Below the pieces are notes generated by a model. It saw only the letters and a list, made by a program, of their open reading frames with translations, did not search any database and was not told the DNA's origin. A stretch of 64,000 nt of DNA from Histomonas meleagridis 2922-C6/04-290x. Its lineage: Eukaryota; Protista; Parabasalia. Positions 12,697-55,649 of this stretch are shown in pieces; the first letter of the stretch is position 1; each line of letters begins with the position of its first letter. Location of the stretch: contig JAANOX010000087.1 of NCBI GenBank assembly GCA_020184695.1, positions 124,001 to 188,000 on the forward strand. The letters run 5' to 3'. The position numbers and the translations under genes are program-made.

Positions 12697-13239
12697 TTTA
12701 GATTTGATTTGTGAAGTCAAAGACCACCGTAATAGCTACCCATAGCGTAATTCAAAAGGTTAATTAAATCATTGAAAATTAAAATATTCAGAGGAACACC
12801 ACTTGTTGTTTAAATCCGGTGATAATTGAATTGAGTTATTTTGTTTTTTGGTAATTCAAAAACTTCTATCGTATTATGTCAAAAATTTTTTGCCATTCAA
12901 ATTTGATTAGGTATACGCAAATAGAAGGTTATCATCCCAATGATTAGGAATTGCATCATATGTACGAAAAATAAGTTACCATAAAAGATTCAATTTATGA
13001 AGACAACCTAAAATATGTTGATTCTTGAATAGTAAAAAAACTAGTAGTTATTGCAAAAGCATTCTGAAAACTCTCTCAAATTTATTTTTTTAATGATGAA
13101 GAATCAACATATTTTGATATCTTTATGCAGACATAGTAACAAAAAGACAACAAAACACTGATGGTATATGTTACTGCGATTATTATTTTCTATATTTTCT
13201 TCAAATATGAAAAATAGAGGCAATAAATAAAAAAAATTA

Positions 13240-13257
13240 TTGCTTTGGATGGGGCTC
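13240..13257 (-). repeat. 3' target-site duplication, identical to the 3' end of tRNA-Met
   Basis: TTGCTTTGGATGGGGCTC, identical to 18468-18485, followed on the minus strand by TAATTTTTTTT. Confidence 0.95.
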
Positions 13258-16200
13258 TTTATTTATTTATATGATCCTTCGAGGTTATTATGTTTTCTTC
13301 TATTCGTTAGCAACTCTTCCTTCCGCAGGAACGAGATTACTATGTTTTCTTCGACTTCTTTTCCTTCTTCGTTTTCTGGGACTTTTTCGGTTGGCTTATT
13401 TCTTGATGTACCTCTTCTGATTTCTCTTCTTCTTCCACGTCTGTTTGGTTATTCGGGATTTCTCCTTGAAAGCTTTCTTCTTCGATACTGTCTTCAATTT
13501 CTGTTGATGTTAATGATTCTTCGCCTTCACTTTCATCGGTCTGGACGCCTCTACCTTCATTCACGTTACGATTCCTTGGTTGTGGGTTGATAGCATTCCA
13601 GAAAATTTTCATAGAATGAATTAATGTACATTCACTGCATCTTTTACATGTTTCTGAAGTAATGATTTCATTATTATTACATAATTTTAAGATATCCGAA
13701 TAAGTTTCGAATGGTATTGCTCCAAGAGATGAAATAACAATGATATAGTATTTAACTTTAATTTGATAAGTGTCAGTAATATCTTGAATCAAAGTTTCAT
13801 ATTTCTTATTTTTAATGTAACGACTATAATTTAATGAGTTGGAAATCTCTTCGTCTGGTAATGTGTTAATGTTCGAGATTTCACCATAAGGTATAGTTAT
13901 TTCTGATTATATTAAGATTGCCTTTTTTTGTCATCCAAATACCATATGTCTGGTTTAAGTCTTTTAGATCTATCAGGTAAATGAAAGTCATTAATTTTAA
14001 CTTCTTGTGATCTATGGAAAATAAATTTAGATTTATTTGATTTTTCGATAGATTTAATAATAATTTCACCAACATCATTGTGTCTTCGAGTATATTTGGA
14101 GTATTGAGGAACACAATGATTTAGAATATGTTTCAGTGATTCAATCTCGTTTTGGTTTCTACAATATGGGCAAATTTTGGATGTATTTGGATTCTTTTTA
14201 CTTAAAATTTCCTTAGTAGGTAAGTTATTACATCTTGCATTGATACAAAAACGTTGAATACTATCTGAAGTTTTTCTTGTATAGGTACCGAAAAAAGAGT
14301 TAGAGTATTTAGAGTTTTCAAGAGTAAAAAAAGAGTGACCATGAAGTTTAAATTCTTGAAGTTTATTAAGATGACGTTTTTGAAGTAACGTAATTAACGA
14401 TCTGTTAAAAATTATTGATCGAGTTACATTCAATAATTTCATCATTATCAAGATTCTTCATGGAAAGAGAGTTATTATTAAAGTTGATACCTATATTTAA
14501 TTTACGTGATGCATCGATTGCTCGAATGAATAAATTATTAGTTTTATTCTCTGATTCTTGTGCTATTTGGTTTTCATATTCAGTGATATTGTTAAATCTT
14601 TTGAGTAACTTCTGAGATAATAATTCTTCTAAAATTAATTTCATCTTCTGCCATTTGTTGTATGAAGTGTTTAACTGTTTCATTTTTCGAGTAAAATAAA
14701 GATAAATAAGTTTTAATTTGTAAATAGAGATATCTTTCTTTAAGAGAAGGAATTCCAAGTCCTCCATCTTTCCAATTACAATAAAAGAAATGTTTAGGTG
14801 TACTATTGCTTTTGATATGATTATTAATTAAGTTTCGAATTATTTGATCTAAGTGTTTAAGTTTTGTAAGACTAATTTGTCCATTTATCATAATAAAATC
14901 TAATTGTGGAATTATAAATCGTTTAAGAGCATCTAATTTTTGATTTAATCTTAGTTTTGATTCACCAATTAATTCGATTTTCCTTATAACTTCATTAATA
15001 GTTCGATCTGCGAATTTCATACGTTGTCTTTTAGTAACTGAAATTGCTGAACCTAGATATTGAATATTAGCTAAAACATCATTATTTTGGATTGGGACAT
15101 TATTTATAATCAAAGGTTCTTGTAAAGGAATTCTACGATTACCATCTAAAATGTATGAAAATGATTGGCATTTTTGTGGTGCTAATTGAATTTTAGCATA
15201 ATTACAATATTTTGTTGTAGTATTAATTAATTCTTCCATTTTTTCTCGTTCATCTGAAATTAACATTACATCATCTGCATATACTTGGATTCCCATGTTA
15301 ATATTATCATTTAATTCTTGAATATAGATATCTGTTCCTTTTCGTTCTTCATTAATCTTTCTAATTAGAGGTTCGAGACAAAGATTAAATAAAAGAGGCG
15401 ATAGAGGGCATCCTTGTCTAACTCCTCTTCTTATTCTAATATCATTTGATTTGATTCCATTGATAACAATGTTTGTGGAAATATTTTGATACATAGAATG
15501 AATAATTTCGATTATATTATTGTTAAAGCCTAATTGTTTCATATTATTAAAGATAAATTTATGTGGAATTGAACCGAATGCATTAGCAAAGTCTAGAGTT
15601 GTAATAATAATATTCCTATTTTTCCTATAAGCATCAGATATTAATTCATTGGCTGTGACTGTATGTTCAGTGCAAACCATTACAACCTTTAATGAATCCT
15701 TTTTGTTGTGGTGAGAAAATATGTTTTGATTTGTTTACTATTTGAATACTATCTGCTAATAATGTAGTAAAAATTCTGTAAATTGTATCTGAAATACTTA
15801 TTGGTCTCCAATTCTTTGGTATTGATGGGTCATCTTTTTTGAATATTAAAATAGTTTTGGATTGTTTCCATTGTTCTGGTATTTTTTGAAATTTAATAAT
15901 GTTTTTTTAATAATTAGAGATAATAAAATTGCTGTATCTTTTGCATTACTTTTCCAAACAGAATTAGGAATTCCATCTGGACCACATGCCGATACATTGT
16001 CTTTCTTTTTCATTGTACTAATGCTATTCTTTTTCATCTGTAATATAATCAATAATAAATTTGTTGTCTTCATTAGATAAAAGTTTAGGTAGATACCATG
16101 TATCATCTTCTATAATATGTTCTTTATTAGCCCATTCATTATTAAAATGTTTTTCAAGTTGTTCGATTGGTATATTACATGAAGGTGTTGTATTGGCTAA

Positions 16201-18467
16201 AAGTTTCCATCGGATACATCTTTTAGGATCTTCATCATAAAATTTACGTAGTTTTTTTCACTTCCTTTTATATCATTTGGGTTTAATTTATCAATATAAT
16301 TTCTAAGTATTGTTCTAATCCATTTAAATCTTTCTTCACGATGTTCTTCGTCTTCATTAATTAAATTATCTATATCTTCAACTGATCGAATATTAAATAT
16401 GTTTTTTAAATCATCTTCACTAAATTTACTTAATGATTTGATTAAACCTTCTTTAATATTAGCAATAGCATTTAATGCGTTTTGGTTATTGTTTAAATCT
16501 TCTTGATGTGCATTAATAATATCTATAATTTTATAAATGTAATCAATAATTTTATCGATTTCAATAATTTTAAATTTGATATAAGAATAGTATTTCTTTT
16601 CTTAAGATTTGTTTCTCATCGTATTTAATATTTATTTGATTGAGATTGGGGAATGTATTTGTTAATAGCTTTTGAATTCTATGTGTTGTTTTTAATTAAA
16701 AATCCATCCATAATGTTCCATGTAATGTTATCTTTGTCTAATAAGAATTTAGCTTCTTTTGATAATAATATTTTTAAATAATTCATTGATTTTCGGCTGA
16801 ATAGATTTTCGCTGTGCTTTGTTTAATCTTTTGAAACTAACGTTTTGATTTCGATATTTATTTCTCCATTTGTTACATTTGTCATTATAAAATTGAAGTT
16901 GGTTATTGTTTAACATTTTTAACTGTGTTTTTGGTATTATGATTTAGTTGTTTTTCTTCTTCAATTACTGATGAGATTAGATTCTTCCCTGTTTTGAGTT
17001 TCGATGTTTAATGGATGCAATTCTTCGACTTCTTGAGTTTCTGATTCTTGTTGACTAGTTTCTGTTATGTCTTTAGTCTCTTCTTGATTTATAGTTATAT
17101 GCTCATTATCTGAAGAAGATTCACTTTGTTGTTTTTCAATAGAGCTATCTTCTTCTGAATCTTTATAATTTTGGCTATTTGCGATTTCAATTTCTTTTAG
17201 TGAACCATTGATTATTTGAATTTCTTGGATATTATTTGGTCTAGAACCTCTTATTGTTTGTCTTGAATTGATATGAGTTTGGGAATTATGAAGTCTCATA
17301 GCTTGGACTGAACTAACTATTGTTCCATCATTGCTACATTTAAAACAATCTCTAGGTCTTAATAATTCATAAATTGTAGGTAATGTAGTATTTTCTTTTA
17401 ACATAACTCATAATTAACCCCCAAAAAGGGCCTGCATCTTTCCGCCATTTGACGTAGATTCTATGTTGCTTGTTATAGTGATCATATGCAGATCCTGTTT
17501 TGGTTGTAACATAATTACAGTTATTTATTAAACAAATATTTATATGTCCTAATTTGTTATAAGTATTATTTGTATGATCATATTCATACCACTCAGTATC
17601 TTTTTCTAATAAATATCCAATGATTTCTGATGATAGACAATTGTGTTTTTGATATTGTTCTTGATGAGTATTGAATAAATGTGAATCAATTTGTTGGTGA
17701 TGGTTGGTTCCATAATTGCAGTTATGATATTTACAACAATAAATATAAGGTTGTGGGAACCAGTTCCTCAGAATCATAAGCTGAATTAAATTAAGTTCCA
17801 TTATATCAAAATCTGAATAGTTGTCAAAAACTGATTGGTTGAGCGTATCAATGTATTCTTTAAGTTGTTTGGTATCTGTGATTGTTTTGAGCTTGTTAAT
17901 AACTTTATTTGAAATATCTTCTTGTTCATTGACTTTATCGACTGTCTGAATGTTAACATTAAATTGAATCGGGTTTTCATCGTCGTCGTCTTCTGGATTT
18001 CTAAGGAATTTATCTGTAGATTCTGAAAATTGATCGTTTTGTGGCTGAATCTCGCTGCTATCCGTCTCCTCAAAAGAAAATTCAGAGGAATCATCGGAAT
18101 CTTCAGAATTTATAAGATCAGGGTCAGAAATTTCCGGTTTTCTAAGAAAAAGTCCTTTGAATAGTCTCACATTTGGAAGGTTTTTGAGATGGTCAAAAGC
18201 GGTTTTTATCAGCGGCGTAGATGATGTCTTCTTCCAAAGCTTCGGGGCTAAGTTTTTGGAGATATCGAAGCTCCTAAGGGTGTAGAATGTGCGGGAGAAG
18301 GAGTAGAGTCAACTGGGGTAGGTAAAGTCAAAAGATCTTCTGAATCATCAGATGATAATCGATCTCGTGGATTTAAAATTCGTATCCCTCCTGGCTGAGG
18401 ACTTCTGTTTCCTTCCTGCGAGCACGTAGCTGCATTTTCAGGGGAAAAAAACAAAAAATGATCCATT
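13258..18467 (-). mobile_element. Non-LTR retrotransposon of the RLE (R2/NeSL/R4-like) type, 5.2 kb, full length but frameshifted, inserted in a tRNA-Met gene
   Basis: N-terminal C2H2-like fingers (16961-18170). RT motifs LDFANAFGSI, RGVRQGCPLSPLLF and YADD (14592-15680). CPYC...HILNHC knuckle and KPDIW endonuclease (13912-14451). (TAAA)n tail and 18-bp TSD. Confidence 0.95.
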
Positions 18468-18485
18468 TTGCTTTGGATGGGGCTC
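18468..18485 (-). repeat. 5' target-site duplication (part of the intact tRNA-Met)
   Basis: Exact 18-bp match to 13240-13257. Confidence 0.95.
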
Positions 18486-18541
18486 GAACCCACGACCTCA
18501 GGATTATGAGACCTGCGCTCTGCCGATTGAGCTACCAAAGC
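18469..18541 (-). tRNA. tRNA-Met(CAT), elongator type
   Basis: GCTTTGG/CCAAAGC acceptor stem, CTCATAA anticodon loop, GGTTCGAGCC T-arm, G1-C72 pair, 73 nt. Confidence 0.97.
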
Positions 18542-18611
18542 CTGTTTCCCTCACTTTAATAATGTTATTTAGTATTAAACAGATACTTTTATTGATATTG
18601 AGCATCATCAA

Positions 18612-18639
18612 ACGGTTTTGGGAGTTTGGTCATCCCTTT
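18612..18639 (+). promoter_or_regulatory. Trichomonad M3 (ACGGTT) and M5 (CCTTT)-like promoter elements
   Basis: ACGGTT at 18612 and CCTTT at 18635, 11 nt before the RPL27a ATG. The same pair precedes RPL39. Confidence 0.5.
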
Positions 18640-18645
18640 TGCTTA

Positions 18646-19095
18646 ATGCCAACTCGCTTTAAGAAGTCAAGGAAACTTCGTGGCCAAGAATCTATGGGTT
18701 ACGGTCGTGTTGGAAAACACAGGAAATCACCAGGAGGTTGCGGTAATGCAGGTGGTCAACACCATCAAAGAACTTGGTTCGATCGTTATCACCCAGGTTA
18801 CTTTGGAAAAGTTGGTATGCGCCGCCTCCATATTTTCAAATGCCGTGAATGGGAACCAATCATCAATATTGACAAACTTTGGACATTAGTCCCAGAAGAA
18901 GTTCGCAATCAAGCTGCTTCTAAAAAGCAAGGCGATGCAGTTCCAGTCATTGATTGCGTTGCCAATGGTTATTTCAAGGTTGTTGGCCGTGGCGAGCTTC
19001 CACAAATTCCATTAATAGTTCGTGCCAAAGATTTTTCAAAGTCAGCCGAAGCCAAGATCAAAGCAGCTGGCGGTGCATGTGAAAAAGTCAAGTAA
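18646..19095 (+). CDS. RPL27A: 60S ribosomal protein L27a (uL15)
   Basis: [13 protein letters not shown]...[10 protein letters not shown]...[11 protein letters not shown]. True ATG at 18646. Confidence 0.97.
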
Positions 19096-44716: not shown

Positions 44717-45336
44717 ACAATATGAATTTTCAAGTTTTATTTGTTTTATCCCACATGATACGTAATTGAACTGTGGTAAAGATCAAAAGTTTTCAGAATA
44801 ATTTGATATCCTGTCGTGTGTTAAATGAAATGATTGTTGTAAATATTTAATTACTTTTTGAAAATTAAAATTTTGATATTTATTATGATAACGCAGAGTT
44901 TTAAGTTTTTTCCATGTTGTTGAAGAGAAAATCTTCTGACAATATTTTCATTTGAACGATAAATTATTGAAAAATTCTCTCCGTAAAATGATTGGAATCC
45001 ACTTTAGATTTTTTGATTAGTAAAAACTATTTAATATATGATATAAATTAAATATGTACTCATTTGGTAAATGGAATTTTTATTAATATATGAGTTAATA
45101 TTATATTTATGCTTTACATAAAGCAAAGGAATTTGTTTATCATTATTATCAATTTATTTATTTTTGGATGATCAGGTGAAGATGCTTTCATATGTACCGT
45201 ATTAAATAATATGAATAATTTCATAATATTATTTGAAAACATAAAATATAACATCTAAATTTTTTTTTGGAATGATCATCATTTGTTTTAGTTTAATTTA
45301 ATAACTGTATATTAATTATCTAAAATTCATCAGACT

Positions 45337-45410
45337 TCCTCCCTAACTCAGTTGGTTAGAGTGTCAGACTGTTAATCTGGAAGTCGTGTGTTCGAGCCAC
45401 ACGGGAGGAG
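45337..45410 (+). tRNA. tRNA-Asn(GTT)
   Basis: TCCTCCC/GGGAGGA acceptor stem, CTGTTAA anticodon loop, GTTCGAG T-loop, downstream T7 terminator. Confidence 0.96.
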
Positions 45411-45454
45411 ATTTTTTTGTTTTTTTTGTGGATTGATTCATTTCTTTGCTTTAA

Positions 45455-51972: not shown

Positions 51973-54900
51973 TTAGTAAAATTCATCAGTTACAAGGAGC
52001 GGCTCGTCGGAATCGGTGTTTTTAGCTCTTCGGGTCTTAATCCTATACACAGTGTATATAACCACCGCAACAAGCACAAAGCCAATTACGCCGACTCCGA
52101 ACATCGTTGACTTCAAGTTGTCGTTTTGCTCGCTTTTGCCGTACCTGCCATAGTTTAGCGTGGCCGTCTCCTTGTCGTCGTCCTTTTCTTTGTCGTCTTC
52201 GTCATCGTCGTCATCGTCGTCATCTTCATCACTTTCTTTGTCTTTTTGCGTTTTTTCTTTGTCCTCTGCATCATTTTCTTTTTGCTTCTTGTTGATTTGA
52301 TCCTGTTCTTTGTCTTTATTATCTTCACCTTCTTTATCTTTCTGCTCTTTCTGTTCCTTATCTTTATCTATTTGTTCATTTTCCTTATCTTCTTTGTCTT
52401 TCTGTTCTTTCTGTTCCTTATCTTTATTCTCTTCATCTGTTTTATCTTTCTGCTCTTTTTTTTCCTTATCTTTATCTATTTGTTCATTTTCCTTATCTTC
52501 TTTGTCTTTCTGTTCCTTAACTTTATCTTCTTTATCTTTCTGTTCTTTCTGTTCTTTCTGTTCCCATTATCTTTATTCTCTTCATCTGTTTTATCTTTCT
52601 GCTCTTTCTGTTCCTTATCTTTATCTATTTGTTCATTTTCCTTATCTTCTTTGTCTTTCTGTTCCTTATCTTTATCTTCTTTATCTTTCTGTTCTTTCTG
52701 TTCCTTATCTTTATTCTCTTCATCTGTTTTATCTTTCTGCTCTTTCTGTTCCTTATCTTTATCTATTTGTTCATTTTCCTTATCTTCTTTGTCTTTCTGT
52801 TCCTTAACTTTATCTTCTTTATCTTTCTGTTCTTTCTGTTCTTTCTGTTCCTTATCTTTATTCTCTTCATCTGTTTTATCTTTCTGCTCTTTCTGTTCCT
52901 TATCTTTATCTATTTGTTCATTTTCCTTATCTTCTTTGTCTTTCTGTTCCTTATCTTTATCTTCTTTATCTTTCTGTTCTTTCTGTTCCTTATCTTTATT
53001 CTCTTCATCTTCTTTATCTTTTTGTTTCTTATCTTTATTCTCTTCATCTGTTTTATCTTTCTGCTCTTTCTGTTCCTTATCTTTATTCTCTTTATCTTCT
53101 TCATCTTTTTGTTTCTTATCTTTATTCTCTTCATCTGTTTTATCTTTCTGCTCTTTCTGTTCCTTATCTTTATCTATTTGTTCATTTTCCTTATCTTCTT
53201 TGTCTTTCTGTTCCTTATCTTTATCTTCTTTATCTTTCTGTTCTTTCTGTTCCTTATCTTTATTCTCTTCATCTTCTTTATCTTTTTGTTTCTTATCTTT
53301 ATTCTCTTCATCTGTTTTATCTTTCTGCTCTTTCTGTTCCTTATCTTTATCTATTTGTTCATTTTCCTTATCTTCTTTGTCTTTCTGTTCCTTATCTTTA
53401 TCTTCTTTATCTTTCTGTTCTTTCTGTTCCTTATCTTTATTCTCTTCATCTTCTTTATCTTTTTGTTTCTTATCTTTATTCTCTTCATCTTCTTTATCTT
53501 TCTGTTCTTTCTGTTCCTTATCTTTATTCTCTTTATCTTCTTCATCTTTTTGTTTCTTGTCTTTATCTTTTTGTTCATTTCCTTTATCTTCTTTATCTTT
53601 CTTTTCCTTATCTTTATTCTCTTTATCTTCTTCATCTTTTTGTTTCTTGTCTTTATCTTTTTGTTCATTTCCTTTATCTTCTTTATCTTTCTGTTCTTTC
53701 TGTTCCTTATCTTTATTCTCTTTATCTTCTTCATCTTTTTGTTTCTTGTCTTTATCTTTTTGTTCATTTCCTTTATCTTCTTTATCTTTCTTTTCCTTAT
53801 CTTTATTCTCTTTATCTTCTTCATCTTTTTGTTTCTTGTCTTTATCTTTTTGTTCATTTCCTTTATCTTCTTTATCTTTCTTTTCCTTATCTTTATTCTC
53901 TTTATCTTCTTCATCTTTTTGTTTCTTGTCTTTATCTTTTTGTTCATTTTCCTTATCATCTTTATCTTTTTTATCCTTTTGTCTCTTATCTTCTTTATCT
54001 TCTTCTTCATTATCTTTTTGTTCATTTTCTTTATCTTCTTTATCTTTCTGTTCTTTTTGTTTCTTATCTTTATTCTCTTTATCTTCTTTGTCTTTTTGTT
54101 CATTTCCTTTATCTTCTTCACTTTCTTTGCCTTTATCTTTTTTATCATTTTTCTTGTCTTCTTCTTCATTATCTTTTTGTTTCTTATCTTTATCTTTTTG
54201 TTCATTTTCCTTATCATCTTTATCTTTTTGTTCATTTTCCTTATCTTTTTGTTTCTTGTCTTTATCTTTTTGTTTCTTGTCTTTATCTTTTTGTTCATTT
54301 TCTTTATCTTCTTCTTCATTATCTTTTTGTTTCTTGTCTTTATCTATTTGTTCATTTCCTTTATCTTCTTCTTCATTATCTTTTTGTTCATTTTCCTTAT
54401 CATCTTTATCTTTTTGTTTCTTGTCTTTATCTTCTTCTTCATTATCTTTTTGTTCATTTTCCTTATCATCTTTATCTTTTTGTTCATTTTCCTTATCATC
54501 TTTATCTTTTTGTTTCTTGTCTTTATCTTTTTGTTTCTTGTCTTTATCTTTTTGTTCATTTTCTTTATCTTCTTCTTCATTATCTTTTTGTTTCTTGTCT
54601 TTATCTATTTGTTCATTTCCTTTATCTTCTTCTTCATTATCTTTTTGTTCCTTATCTTTATCTTTTTGTTCATTTTCCTTATCATCTTTATCTTTTTGTT
54701 TCTTGTCTTTATCTATTTGTTCATTTCCTTTATCTTTTTTATCTTTTTGTTTCTTATCATCTTTATCTTTTTGTTCCTTTTCTTTATCTTCATTGTTATC
54801 TTTTGCTTTACCTTTTTTATTCTCAGTTTCTTTATCTTCTTCACTTTGCTTACCTTTATTTCCTTGATTTACTTCTGTTTCATTTTCTTTGTTTACTTCT

Positions 54901-55649
54901 GTGGCGTTTTCTTTGGTTATATTTATTGTATTTTCTTTACTTACTTCTGTTTCGTTTTCTTTGGTTGTATTTGTTGGTGTGCGTTTCTTGTTGTTCTTTA
55001 CTGTTTTCCTTTTGCTTTCTTTACTTACTTCTGTTTCGTTTTCTTTGGTTATGTTTATTGTATTTTCTTTACTTACTTCTGTTTCATTTTCTTTGGTTAT
55101 GTTTATTGTATTTTCTTTACTTACTTCTGTTTCATTTTCTTTGGTTATATTTATTGTATTTTCTTTACTTACTTCTGTTTCGTTTTCTTTGGTTAACTCT
55201 GTTGCATCATTTTTTTCATTTCTTTTATCTAATTGATTTGTGCTTTCTCCATCTACTTCCGTTGTGTTTTCTTTGTTTAATTCAATTATATCTTCTGTTG
55301 TTAAATCTGTGATGGTTCGAATCCTTTTTCTTTCAGGTAATTGACTTTTACTTTCTCCGTCTATTTCCGTCATATTTTCTTTCTTTATTTCAGTTGTATT
55401 TCCTTCAATTTCTTGCATTTTTTGATTATTAATTGTTTCTGTTGAATTGTGTATTTCACTATTGTTGACTACATTTACACTAGCATTTCCATTATTCTCT
55501 TTTTCCACAGTTGAAATTATTTTCTTTTTATCAAAAACATTTTGGTTATCGTTTTGTTGAGTAGAAGTTTTATTTAATGGGTAAGGCGTTTTTTCATCTG
55601 AAGAAACATTTTGTTGCAGGATGAAAAGAACTCCGAACAACAACAACAT
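51973..55649 (-). CDS. Repetitive K/D/E-rich type I membrane protein, about 1224 aa, with one apparent 2-nt frameshift near 52565
   Basis: Signal peptide at 55649, then N-glycosylation-rich repeats and about 2.5 kb of KDE repeats. After the frameshift the frame continues to a TM helix (GVGVIGFVLVAVVIYTVY) and the tail DSDEPLLVTDEFY* (TAA at 51973-75). Confidence 0.8.
52300..55200 (-). repeat. Coding minisatellite arrays (KDE units; 48-nt KENETEVSKENTINIT units)
   Basis: Visible multi-level tandem repeats. Confidence 0.95.

Follow-up and report, generated by a model that had tools for sequence, protein, structure and literature searches.

A stretch of 64,000 nucleotides (nt) from the parabasalid Histomonas meleagridis 2922-C6/04-290x, a parasite of poultry (assembly GCA_020184695.1, contig JAANOX010000087.1, positions 124,001 to 188,000 of the forward strand; hereafter ‘the window’) carries a 5.2-kb element inserted at a tRNA gene. 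This element is very probably a site-specific, R2-like retrotransposon of the kind without long terminal repeats (non-LTR), whose only target in H. meleagridis is one elongator tRNA-Met gene and whose staggered nicks would restore the tRNA upon insertion. The anatomy of the insertion, its site specificity and the domain content of the element are direct observations. Coordinates are window positions on the minus strand unless stated otherwise, and C-numbers denote contigs of the assembly, C87 being the contig of the window.

Read along the minus strand, the locus consists of a complete tRNA-Met, the element (18468/18467 to 13258), an TAAATAAATAAA tail, a partial tRNA, the sequence AATAA and a run of eight T. 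ARAGORN and Rfam (RF00005, 68 bits) agree on a complete tRNA-Met(CAT) at 18469-18541, which is the target gene as rebuilt after insertion and is identical to six other genes in the assembly. Its sequence places it in the elongator class, with G1:C72, T54, C60 and an anticodon stem that lacks the three G:C pairs of the GGG/CCC type. The retrotransposon itself, delimited by a DNA search of its own genome and by a four-copy alignment, spans 13258-18468 and measures 5210-5211 bp. It closes with a 3' untranslated region of 82 nt (13258-13339) that ends in (TAAA)3 at 13258-13269, and whose predicted fold is no better than those of shuffled sequences (z = -0.67). The downstream partial tRNA copy, G57 to A73, follows at 13241-13257, where it would mark the priming site; it was found by the repeat search and by a genome count of 16-mers. 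Beyond it, at 13229-13236, lies the T8 run that is the original terminator of the tRNA gene, displaced by 5.2 kb. The initial annotation of this locus had already described the 5' copy of the duplication as completing a full tRNA and the 3' copy as lying between a (TAAA)n tail and the original T-run, and both descriptions hold.

The length of the duplication needs a small correction. The same annotation gave it as 18 bp, and an 18-bp repeat, TTGCTTTGGATGGGGCTC (repeat family D14), is indeed exact in the window, at 13240-13257 and 18468-18485, but across the family the duplication is 17 bp, running from G57 to A73 of the tRNA (upstream copy at 18469-18485, to which the 18-bp version adds base 18468). 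The shorter limit follows from three other loci: the partial copy on C88 ends at A73 with T10 directly next, the one empty tRNA-Met gene, on C83, has a G next, and an older element remnant on C62 starts right after A73. The 18th matching base in the window is an A, and is ambiguous because it could belong to the element, as its first base, or to the native flank. Under a model of target-primed reverse transcription (TPRT), these limits would place both cuts: the antisense strand would be nicked for priming within the B box, between C56 and G57, and the sense strand would be cut where the gene ends. The positions of the nicks, like their order, are deduced from the anatomy.

Site specificity was assessed in the whole assembly of 43,133,364 bp in 281 contigs. 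A DNA search with the element found five further copies, 91-99% identical, on C245, C88, C62, C32 and C47. All six family copies start directly after a complete, identical tRNA-Met, at the same nucleotide, and there are none elsewhere in the assembly. Seven identical genes encode this tRNA-Met, of which six are occupied; in the empty gene on C83, GAAAATTTTTTT comes next. The 16-mer tail of the tRNA occurs exactly 11 times in the genome, namely in the seven genes and in four partial copies at element 3' ends, against no occurrence of the reversed control, so that chance is excluded. In the four copies that retain their 3' end, the (TAAA)n tail varies (three units in the window copy, four on C62, degenerate on C88) and the partial tRNA is followed by differing DNA: a T-run on C87, C245 and C88, and the older element remnant on C62. 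A T-run likewise follows the empty C83 gene, just as one follows the partial copies on C245 and C88. There is no flank similarity on either side among C87, C245, C88 and C62. The copies on C32 and C47 have about 150 bp of upstream flank in common (88% identity) and are therefore counted as one insertion, duplicated later. There have thus been at least five independent insertions at one nucleotide, and the element is site-specific for one elongator tRNA-Met gene.

Some of these loci also hold older material. Directly after the partial tRNA on C62 (C62:104457-104560) lie about 100 bp that resemble the element 5' end but are strongly diverged (AAAACGATTACTTTTTGTTTTTTTCTCC...); this stretch looks like what is left of an earlier insertion, upstream of which the newer element has been stacked in the rebuilt tRNA. 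Downstream of the truncated copy on C47, the segment C47:152856-153431 is 71% identical to element nt 303-897 and is an older, diverged member at the same locus. On the upstream side, the motif AATGT occurs 5-9 nt before the tRNA start in five of the seven tRNA-Met genes and is absent from the window copy, from the empty C83 gene and from a tRNA-Asn gene in the window; it may be a promoter element or the trace of an old gene duplication.

The long frames of the element all lie on the minus strand and are split into pieces, and protein comparisons were made with unbroken pieces only. A piece of 362 amino acids (14592-15680) is a reverse transcriptase (RT; Pfam RVT_1, E=2.5e-28), whose closest solved structures are R2 proteins (E=3e-35), followed by L1 ORF2 (E=1e-20). 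The next piece, 13912-14451, matches the R2 structures by phmmer (E=2e-6), the alignment taking in the linker, a CCHC zinc motif (CPYC...H...C), an RHN motif and the KPD motif of the endonuclease. The remainder of a restriction-like endonuclease (RLE) and an acidic C-terminus, identified by translation and alignment, occupy 13340-13911, with the stop codon at 13340-13342. By itself, the C-terminal RLE piece gave no phmmer match to solved structures. Its identity comes from a MAFFT alignment in which the C-terminal frames of another copy were set beside sister-family proteins and two proteins taken as true R2 on the strength of their matches to R2 structures (P0021 and P0023; E=5e-111 and 6e-159). 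The CCHC, RHN and KPD motifs, IIEITIPYG with its acidic catalytic residue, the lysine-bearing KNKKY and SSLGA all match the R2 endonuclease. The segment IIEITIPYG, which bears the catalytic glutamate, is intact in three other copies and is out of frame in the window copy through a private 1-nt insertion.

N-terminal to the RT, two frame pieces (16961-18170) contain an acidic stretch and, alongside it, three C2H2-like fingers that can be read in the translations, two of the form CX4CX12HX4H and one CX2C...HX4H. Pfam had no match to these fingers or to any other N-terminal domain, and the region is weakly similar to the N-termini of relatives from metagenomes. It is presumed to be a family-specific DNA-recognition module. 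In no piece of the element did Pfam find a match to Exo_endo_phos, the family of apurinic/apyrimidinic (AP) endonucleases, or to any protease family, the Ulp1-like kind included. There are no LTRs, the duplicated target being the sole terminal repeat. Since frames that are split in one copy join up in others, the element would have a single long open reading frame (ORF). A non-LTR RT, a CCHC motif with a PD-(D/E)-K endonuclease, N-terminal fingers in one ORF and insertion at a single site are together the hallmarks of RLE non-LTR elements, and the element is an RLE-bearing non-LTR retrotransposon of the R2 group in the Repbase sense (R2, R4, NeSL, HERO).

Within that group the family stands apart from R2 proper. 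A six-frame search of the genome with the RT piece gave 54 matches, with more than 20 loci in other families at 34-46% RT identity. An RT tree was built from the Histomonas families, 20 metagenome proteins and the true R2 proteins P0021-P0023, with a midpoint root and leaving out rows with stops or short matches. In this tree the Histomonas families and the 20 metagenome proteins form one group (support 93/86), which a 96/87 branch, holding both R2 types, parts from P0021-P0023 (E=5e-111 to 6e-159 against R2 structures), and the tRNA-Met family forms a separate long branch. Both this placement and the target, a tRNA gene and not 28S ribosomal DNA (rDNA), set the family outside the R2 clade in the strict sense. 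One relative, the 1035-amino-acid P0019, is filed under a metagenome-assembled genome of Mycoplasmoidaceae on a 36-kb contig, and is probably eukaryotic (protist) DNA binned with a bacterium.

The sister families of the same genome share the architecture of the Met family, and where their 3' ends lie inside the examined DNA they show an A-rich tail, 14-16 nt resembling a tRNA 3' end and a T-run. The tail itself differs, being (TAAA)n in the Met family and AATAAACA in a sister family. On C175, C20, C235 and C42 the tRNA-like end is the last 14-15 nt of tRNA-Asn, matching a tRNA-Asn(GTT) gene in the window (45336-45411) that has T7GT8 directly next and is unoccupied; this gene is a vacant target for the tRNA-Asn-specific sister families. 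Besides tRNA-Asn, at least four further tRNA-like 3' ends occur among the sister families, duplicated around the element as in the Met family. Two of these, searched genome-wide, gave same-strand pairs 6.3-7.1 kb apart that bracket RT matches. At C269:61-12498, the tail TCCCTGCGGGACCA occurs three times on one strand at a spacing of about 6.2 kb, and each interval contains an RT match; these are two sister-family elements in head-to-tail order after a single tRNA gene. Between the tRNA-Asn and tRNA-Met families, the N-terminal 730 or so residues cannot be aligned, which fits a family-specific module for target recognition. The T-loop nick would also differ in position, falling at 56/57 in the Met family and at 59/60 in the Asn family, that is, 3 nt further 5' for Met.

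The junction at the 5' end of the element is unusually compact. The element begins with AAATGGATCATTTTTTGTTTTTTTCC, in which nt 3-5 are the ATG (18464-18466) of its long reading frame, MDHFLFFS..., so that the frame starts 2 nt past the discriminator base of the tRNA. Codons 4-8 of this frame are a T6GT7 run (18445-18458), which lies 10 nt past the tRNA end. Traced in C62 and C88, the frame runs on into the finger-containing frame; it is broken in the window copy by a private extra A in an A-run (nt 212) and in C62 by a private TAG. The T6GT7 run is kept in all six copies, and the older diverged remnant on C62 has T5GT7. T-runs of this kind end RNA polymerase III (Pol III) transcription, and the occupied gene would therefore regain a terminator 10 nt past its end, the run being the likely replacement for the displaced one. 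F-rich peptides also open two distant full-length metagenome relatives (MNNFHFFS.. and MFFD..), a hint that the overlap between start codon and T-run has been conserved.

These results bear out the larger proposal of the initial annotation, that a 5.2-kb element with RT and RLE domains belongs to a parabasalid family that targets the B-box region of a tRNA gene and spares its target. The RVT_1 match and the RLE motifs aligned with true R2 proteins account for the first part, and the six out of six copies in tRNA-Met, each behind a complete tRNA and each with a new T-run next, for the second. The test set beforehand was a genome search for other copies, which at unrelated sites would have made this a chance insertion; the proposal passed it, for the copies all sit at the same tRNA-Met nucleotide in unrelated flanks, with none elsewhere.

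By analogy with R2, insertion could proceed as follows. The family-specific N-terminal fingers of the protein would bind the tRNA gene, and the antisense strand would be nicked in the T-loop (B box), after position 56 of the tRNA and before position 57. The 3' end at this nick would prime reverse transcription from the (TAAA)n end of the element RNA. The sense strand would then be cut 17 bp further on, right after the discriminator A73, and fill-in of the stagger would duplicate positions 57-73, such that the upstream copy completes the tRNA and an intact gene is left directly ahead of the element. A T6GT7 run able to stop Pol III would come with the first 24 nt of the insertion, and the occupied gene should stay usable, which would explain why six of the seven genes are occupied. 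Continued tRNA expression from occupied genes is thus to be expected under this scheme.

How the element RNA acquires its 5' end bears on this scheme. With Rfam at a permissive threshold only the tRNA was found, and no ribozyme family, the hepatitis delta virus (HDV)-like one included, matched the 5' region. An initiator-like TCATT is present, but it lies downstream of the ATG and therefore cannot yield a full-length RNA. Transcription could start at the junction, or a longer transcript could be processed after A73. The second candidate lends itself to a more elaborate idea, which we consider quite improbable, in which the tRNA gene has been made part of the life cycle of the element: a start set by RNase Z would replace the R2 ribozyme, the frame would begin 2 nt on in an uncapped RNA, and the F-rich codons would double as Pol III terminator and so keep the host gene working. 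Such a retrotransposon would be nearly harmless to its target and hence able to saturate a whole family of tRNA genes.

The same processing figures in the alternative that survives best, although we think it unlikely. Here the 17-nt duplication would not come from staggered nicks at all. Instead, a co-transcript starting in or upstream of the tRNA would carry the 3' part of the tRNA at its 5' end, and once reverse-transcribed this part would pair with the target and so restore the tRNA; in one variant an RNase Z cut after A73 would set the exact 5' end, in the role of the R2 ribozyme. R2 uses 28S co-transcripts (PMC3414825). Such an origin would suit an element whose first base, in all six copies and likewise in the older C62 remnant, is the one next to the discriminator, and whose reading frame, 2 nt on, leaves no space for a 5' leader of its own; the position of TCATT past the ATG and the lack of a detected HDV-like ribozyme (Rfam) point the same way. 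However, T6GT7 right after the tRNA should halt Pol III, so that read-through by RNA polymerase II from upstream would be needed, and no conserved promoter is found upstream beyond the short AATGT motif. Moreover, other RLE elements, such as those of the CRE/SLACS group, usually make long target duplications by staggered cutting.

A second alternative, in which tRNA-Met is mobile cargo and the element, with a 5' tRNA and a 3' tRNA-like piece, inserts at arbitrary sites, is highly improbable and largely refuted. That every copy begins with a tRNA, and that AATGT stands 5-9 nt upstream of five of the seven genes, would be expected of such a unit, but no target duplication surrounds the unit from tRNA to partial tRNA, the longest common words being 5-7 nt of A/T. 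An identical tRNA-Met gene without the element exists on C83, T-runs come after the partial copies just as they do after native tRNA genes, and the sister families repeat this layout around tRNA-like 3' ends of other kinds, a pattern in keeping with a choice of target and not with cargo. Weakest is a single chance insertion beside a tRNA gene spread later by segmental duplication, which is refuted: the roughly 150 bp of upstream flank common to C32 and C47 (88% identity) record one such event, but C87, C245, C88 and C62 have unrelated DNA on both sides and tail length varies among copies. Cargo, chance insertion and spread by segmental duplication were accordingly rejected on the unrelated flanks, the empty gene and the lack of a duplication flanking the unit.

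Four points weigh against the reading of a tRNA-Met-specific retrotransposon that restores its target by staggered nicks. Support for the specificity comes from no more than about five independent insertions. Because the seven tRNA genes do not differ in sequence, the data cannot separate staggered nicks from tRNA sequence carried by RNA as the source of the 17 nt. The T-run sits in coding sequence, and its conservation could reflect the protein and not termination. Finally, no copy of the tRNA-Met family has an intact frame, the window copy having indels and the other three complete-ended copies having deletions of 44-426 bp.

The last point can be set beside the state of the copies. The four with complete ends are mutually 95.5-98.7% identical in the four-copy alignment. 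Deletions have removed 211 and 239 bp from C245, 426 and 222 bp from C88, and 44 and 316 bp from C62, and C32 and C47 retain 5' parts only. The window copy is the sole copy in the genome without a large internal deletion; it has many private indels of 1-2 nt, nearly all of them in A or T runs. The assembly was made from Nanopore reads and polished with short reads (PMC8529796), so that some homopolymer indels in repeated DNA may be errors, and many of the frame breaks are homopolymer indels that could originate in the Nanopore assembly.

A few observations concern the ends and surroundings of the window copy. The 7-mer GGATCAT occurs both within the first 11 nt of the element (18456-18462) and just ahead of the (TAAA)n tail (13272-13278); the pair is likewise found in C245, C62 and C88, and by a rough estimate would arise by chance in some 1-2% of cases. 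On the opposite strand, 20 bp upstream of the occupied tRNA, lies an intact ribosomal protein gene, of the L27a/L15 type by its translation (18562-19095). The insertion therefore sits in gene-dense DNA and has left its neighbour undisturbed. Farther away, at 52330-55200, a degenerate tandem array with periods of 15, 39 and 138 and extreme strand skew falls within a minus-strand ORF of 1057 amino acids (52476-55649), which is a gene for a repetitive protein, probably rich in Lys, Glu and Asp.

tRNA-specific RLE elements are already known as a kind, and the Histomonas family is a further member. The closest parallel is NeSL-1_TV of Trichomonas vaginalis, which is reported as specific for tRNA-Pro (Kojima and Jurka 2015, PMC4640811). 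By its published description it too is an RLE-type non-LTR retrotransposon of a parabasalid that is specific for a tRNA gene (PMC4640811), and it differs in its target, tRNA-Pro as against tRNA-Met. NeSL-1_TV is classed under the NeSL clade in Repbase, and its position between NeSL and HERO was left unresolved by its own authors (PMC4640811). The Ulp1-like protease is a trait of nematode NeSL only and is not required of the clade. Most Utopia families lack it (PMC4640811), and the absence of a protease from the Histomonas element thus does not exclude membership of the NeSL clade. Two planarian elements of the NeSL/R5 lineage, LIN15_SM and LIN25_SM, target tRNA-Arg and tRNA-Glu, respectively (PMC4640811). 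LIN15_SM sits in mid-tRNA, with a complete gene on neither side (PMC4640811 supplement, in machine-read text), whereas the Histomonas element restores the gene.

Animal R2 elements (R2Bm and R2Tg; structures 8gh6, 9dou and 9nl3) give the best match among solved structures and resemble the Histomonas element in having one ORF with N-terminal C2H2 fingers, RT, CCHC motif and PD-(D/E)-K endonuclease, a multicopy RNA gene as the only target, and TPRT as the presumed mechanism. In contrast, the 28S rDNA target of R2 is broken by insertion, whereas the tRNA gene is rebuilt with a 17-bp duplication, and the self-cleaving ribozyme of R2 has no HDV-like counterpart detected in the Histomonas element by Rfam. 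The use of tRNA genes is not confined to RLE elements. The TRE elements encode an endonuclease of the AP type and, guided by the Pol III machinery, integrate near a tRNA gene, either about 50 bp upstream of it or about 100 bp downstream. The Histomonas element has instead an RLE and no AP endonuclease, and inserts inside the last 17 bp of the gene. Like it, the Dictyostelium elements TRE5 and TRE3 and the Dada elements use tRNA genes as safe landing places (PMC5391098, PMC3706591), although Dada elements are DNA transposons and the Histomonas element a retrotransposon.

Among the papers searched, none describes tRNA-targeting retrotransposons in Histomonas. In the paper on the H. meleagridis genome, the retroelements annotated for this attenuated strain amount to no more than 23 fragments (2.6 kb; PMC8529796), and the tRNA-Met element corrects that published repeat annotation. 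What is new relative to the known kind is that the family is specific for tRNA-Met, that its 17-bp duplication restores the gene, that a start codon and a T-run lie at the junction, and that the target genes are nearly saturated.

It offers a clean natural case of a retrotransposon that has a small RNA gene as a safe landing place, spares the gene and brings in a new, terminator-like T-run. The sister families provide, within one 43-Mb genome, a set of related proteins that differ in their DNA targets, and could show how R2-like proteins change target, a question that matters because R2 proteins are being developed for site-specific gene insertion.

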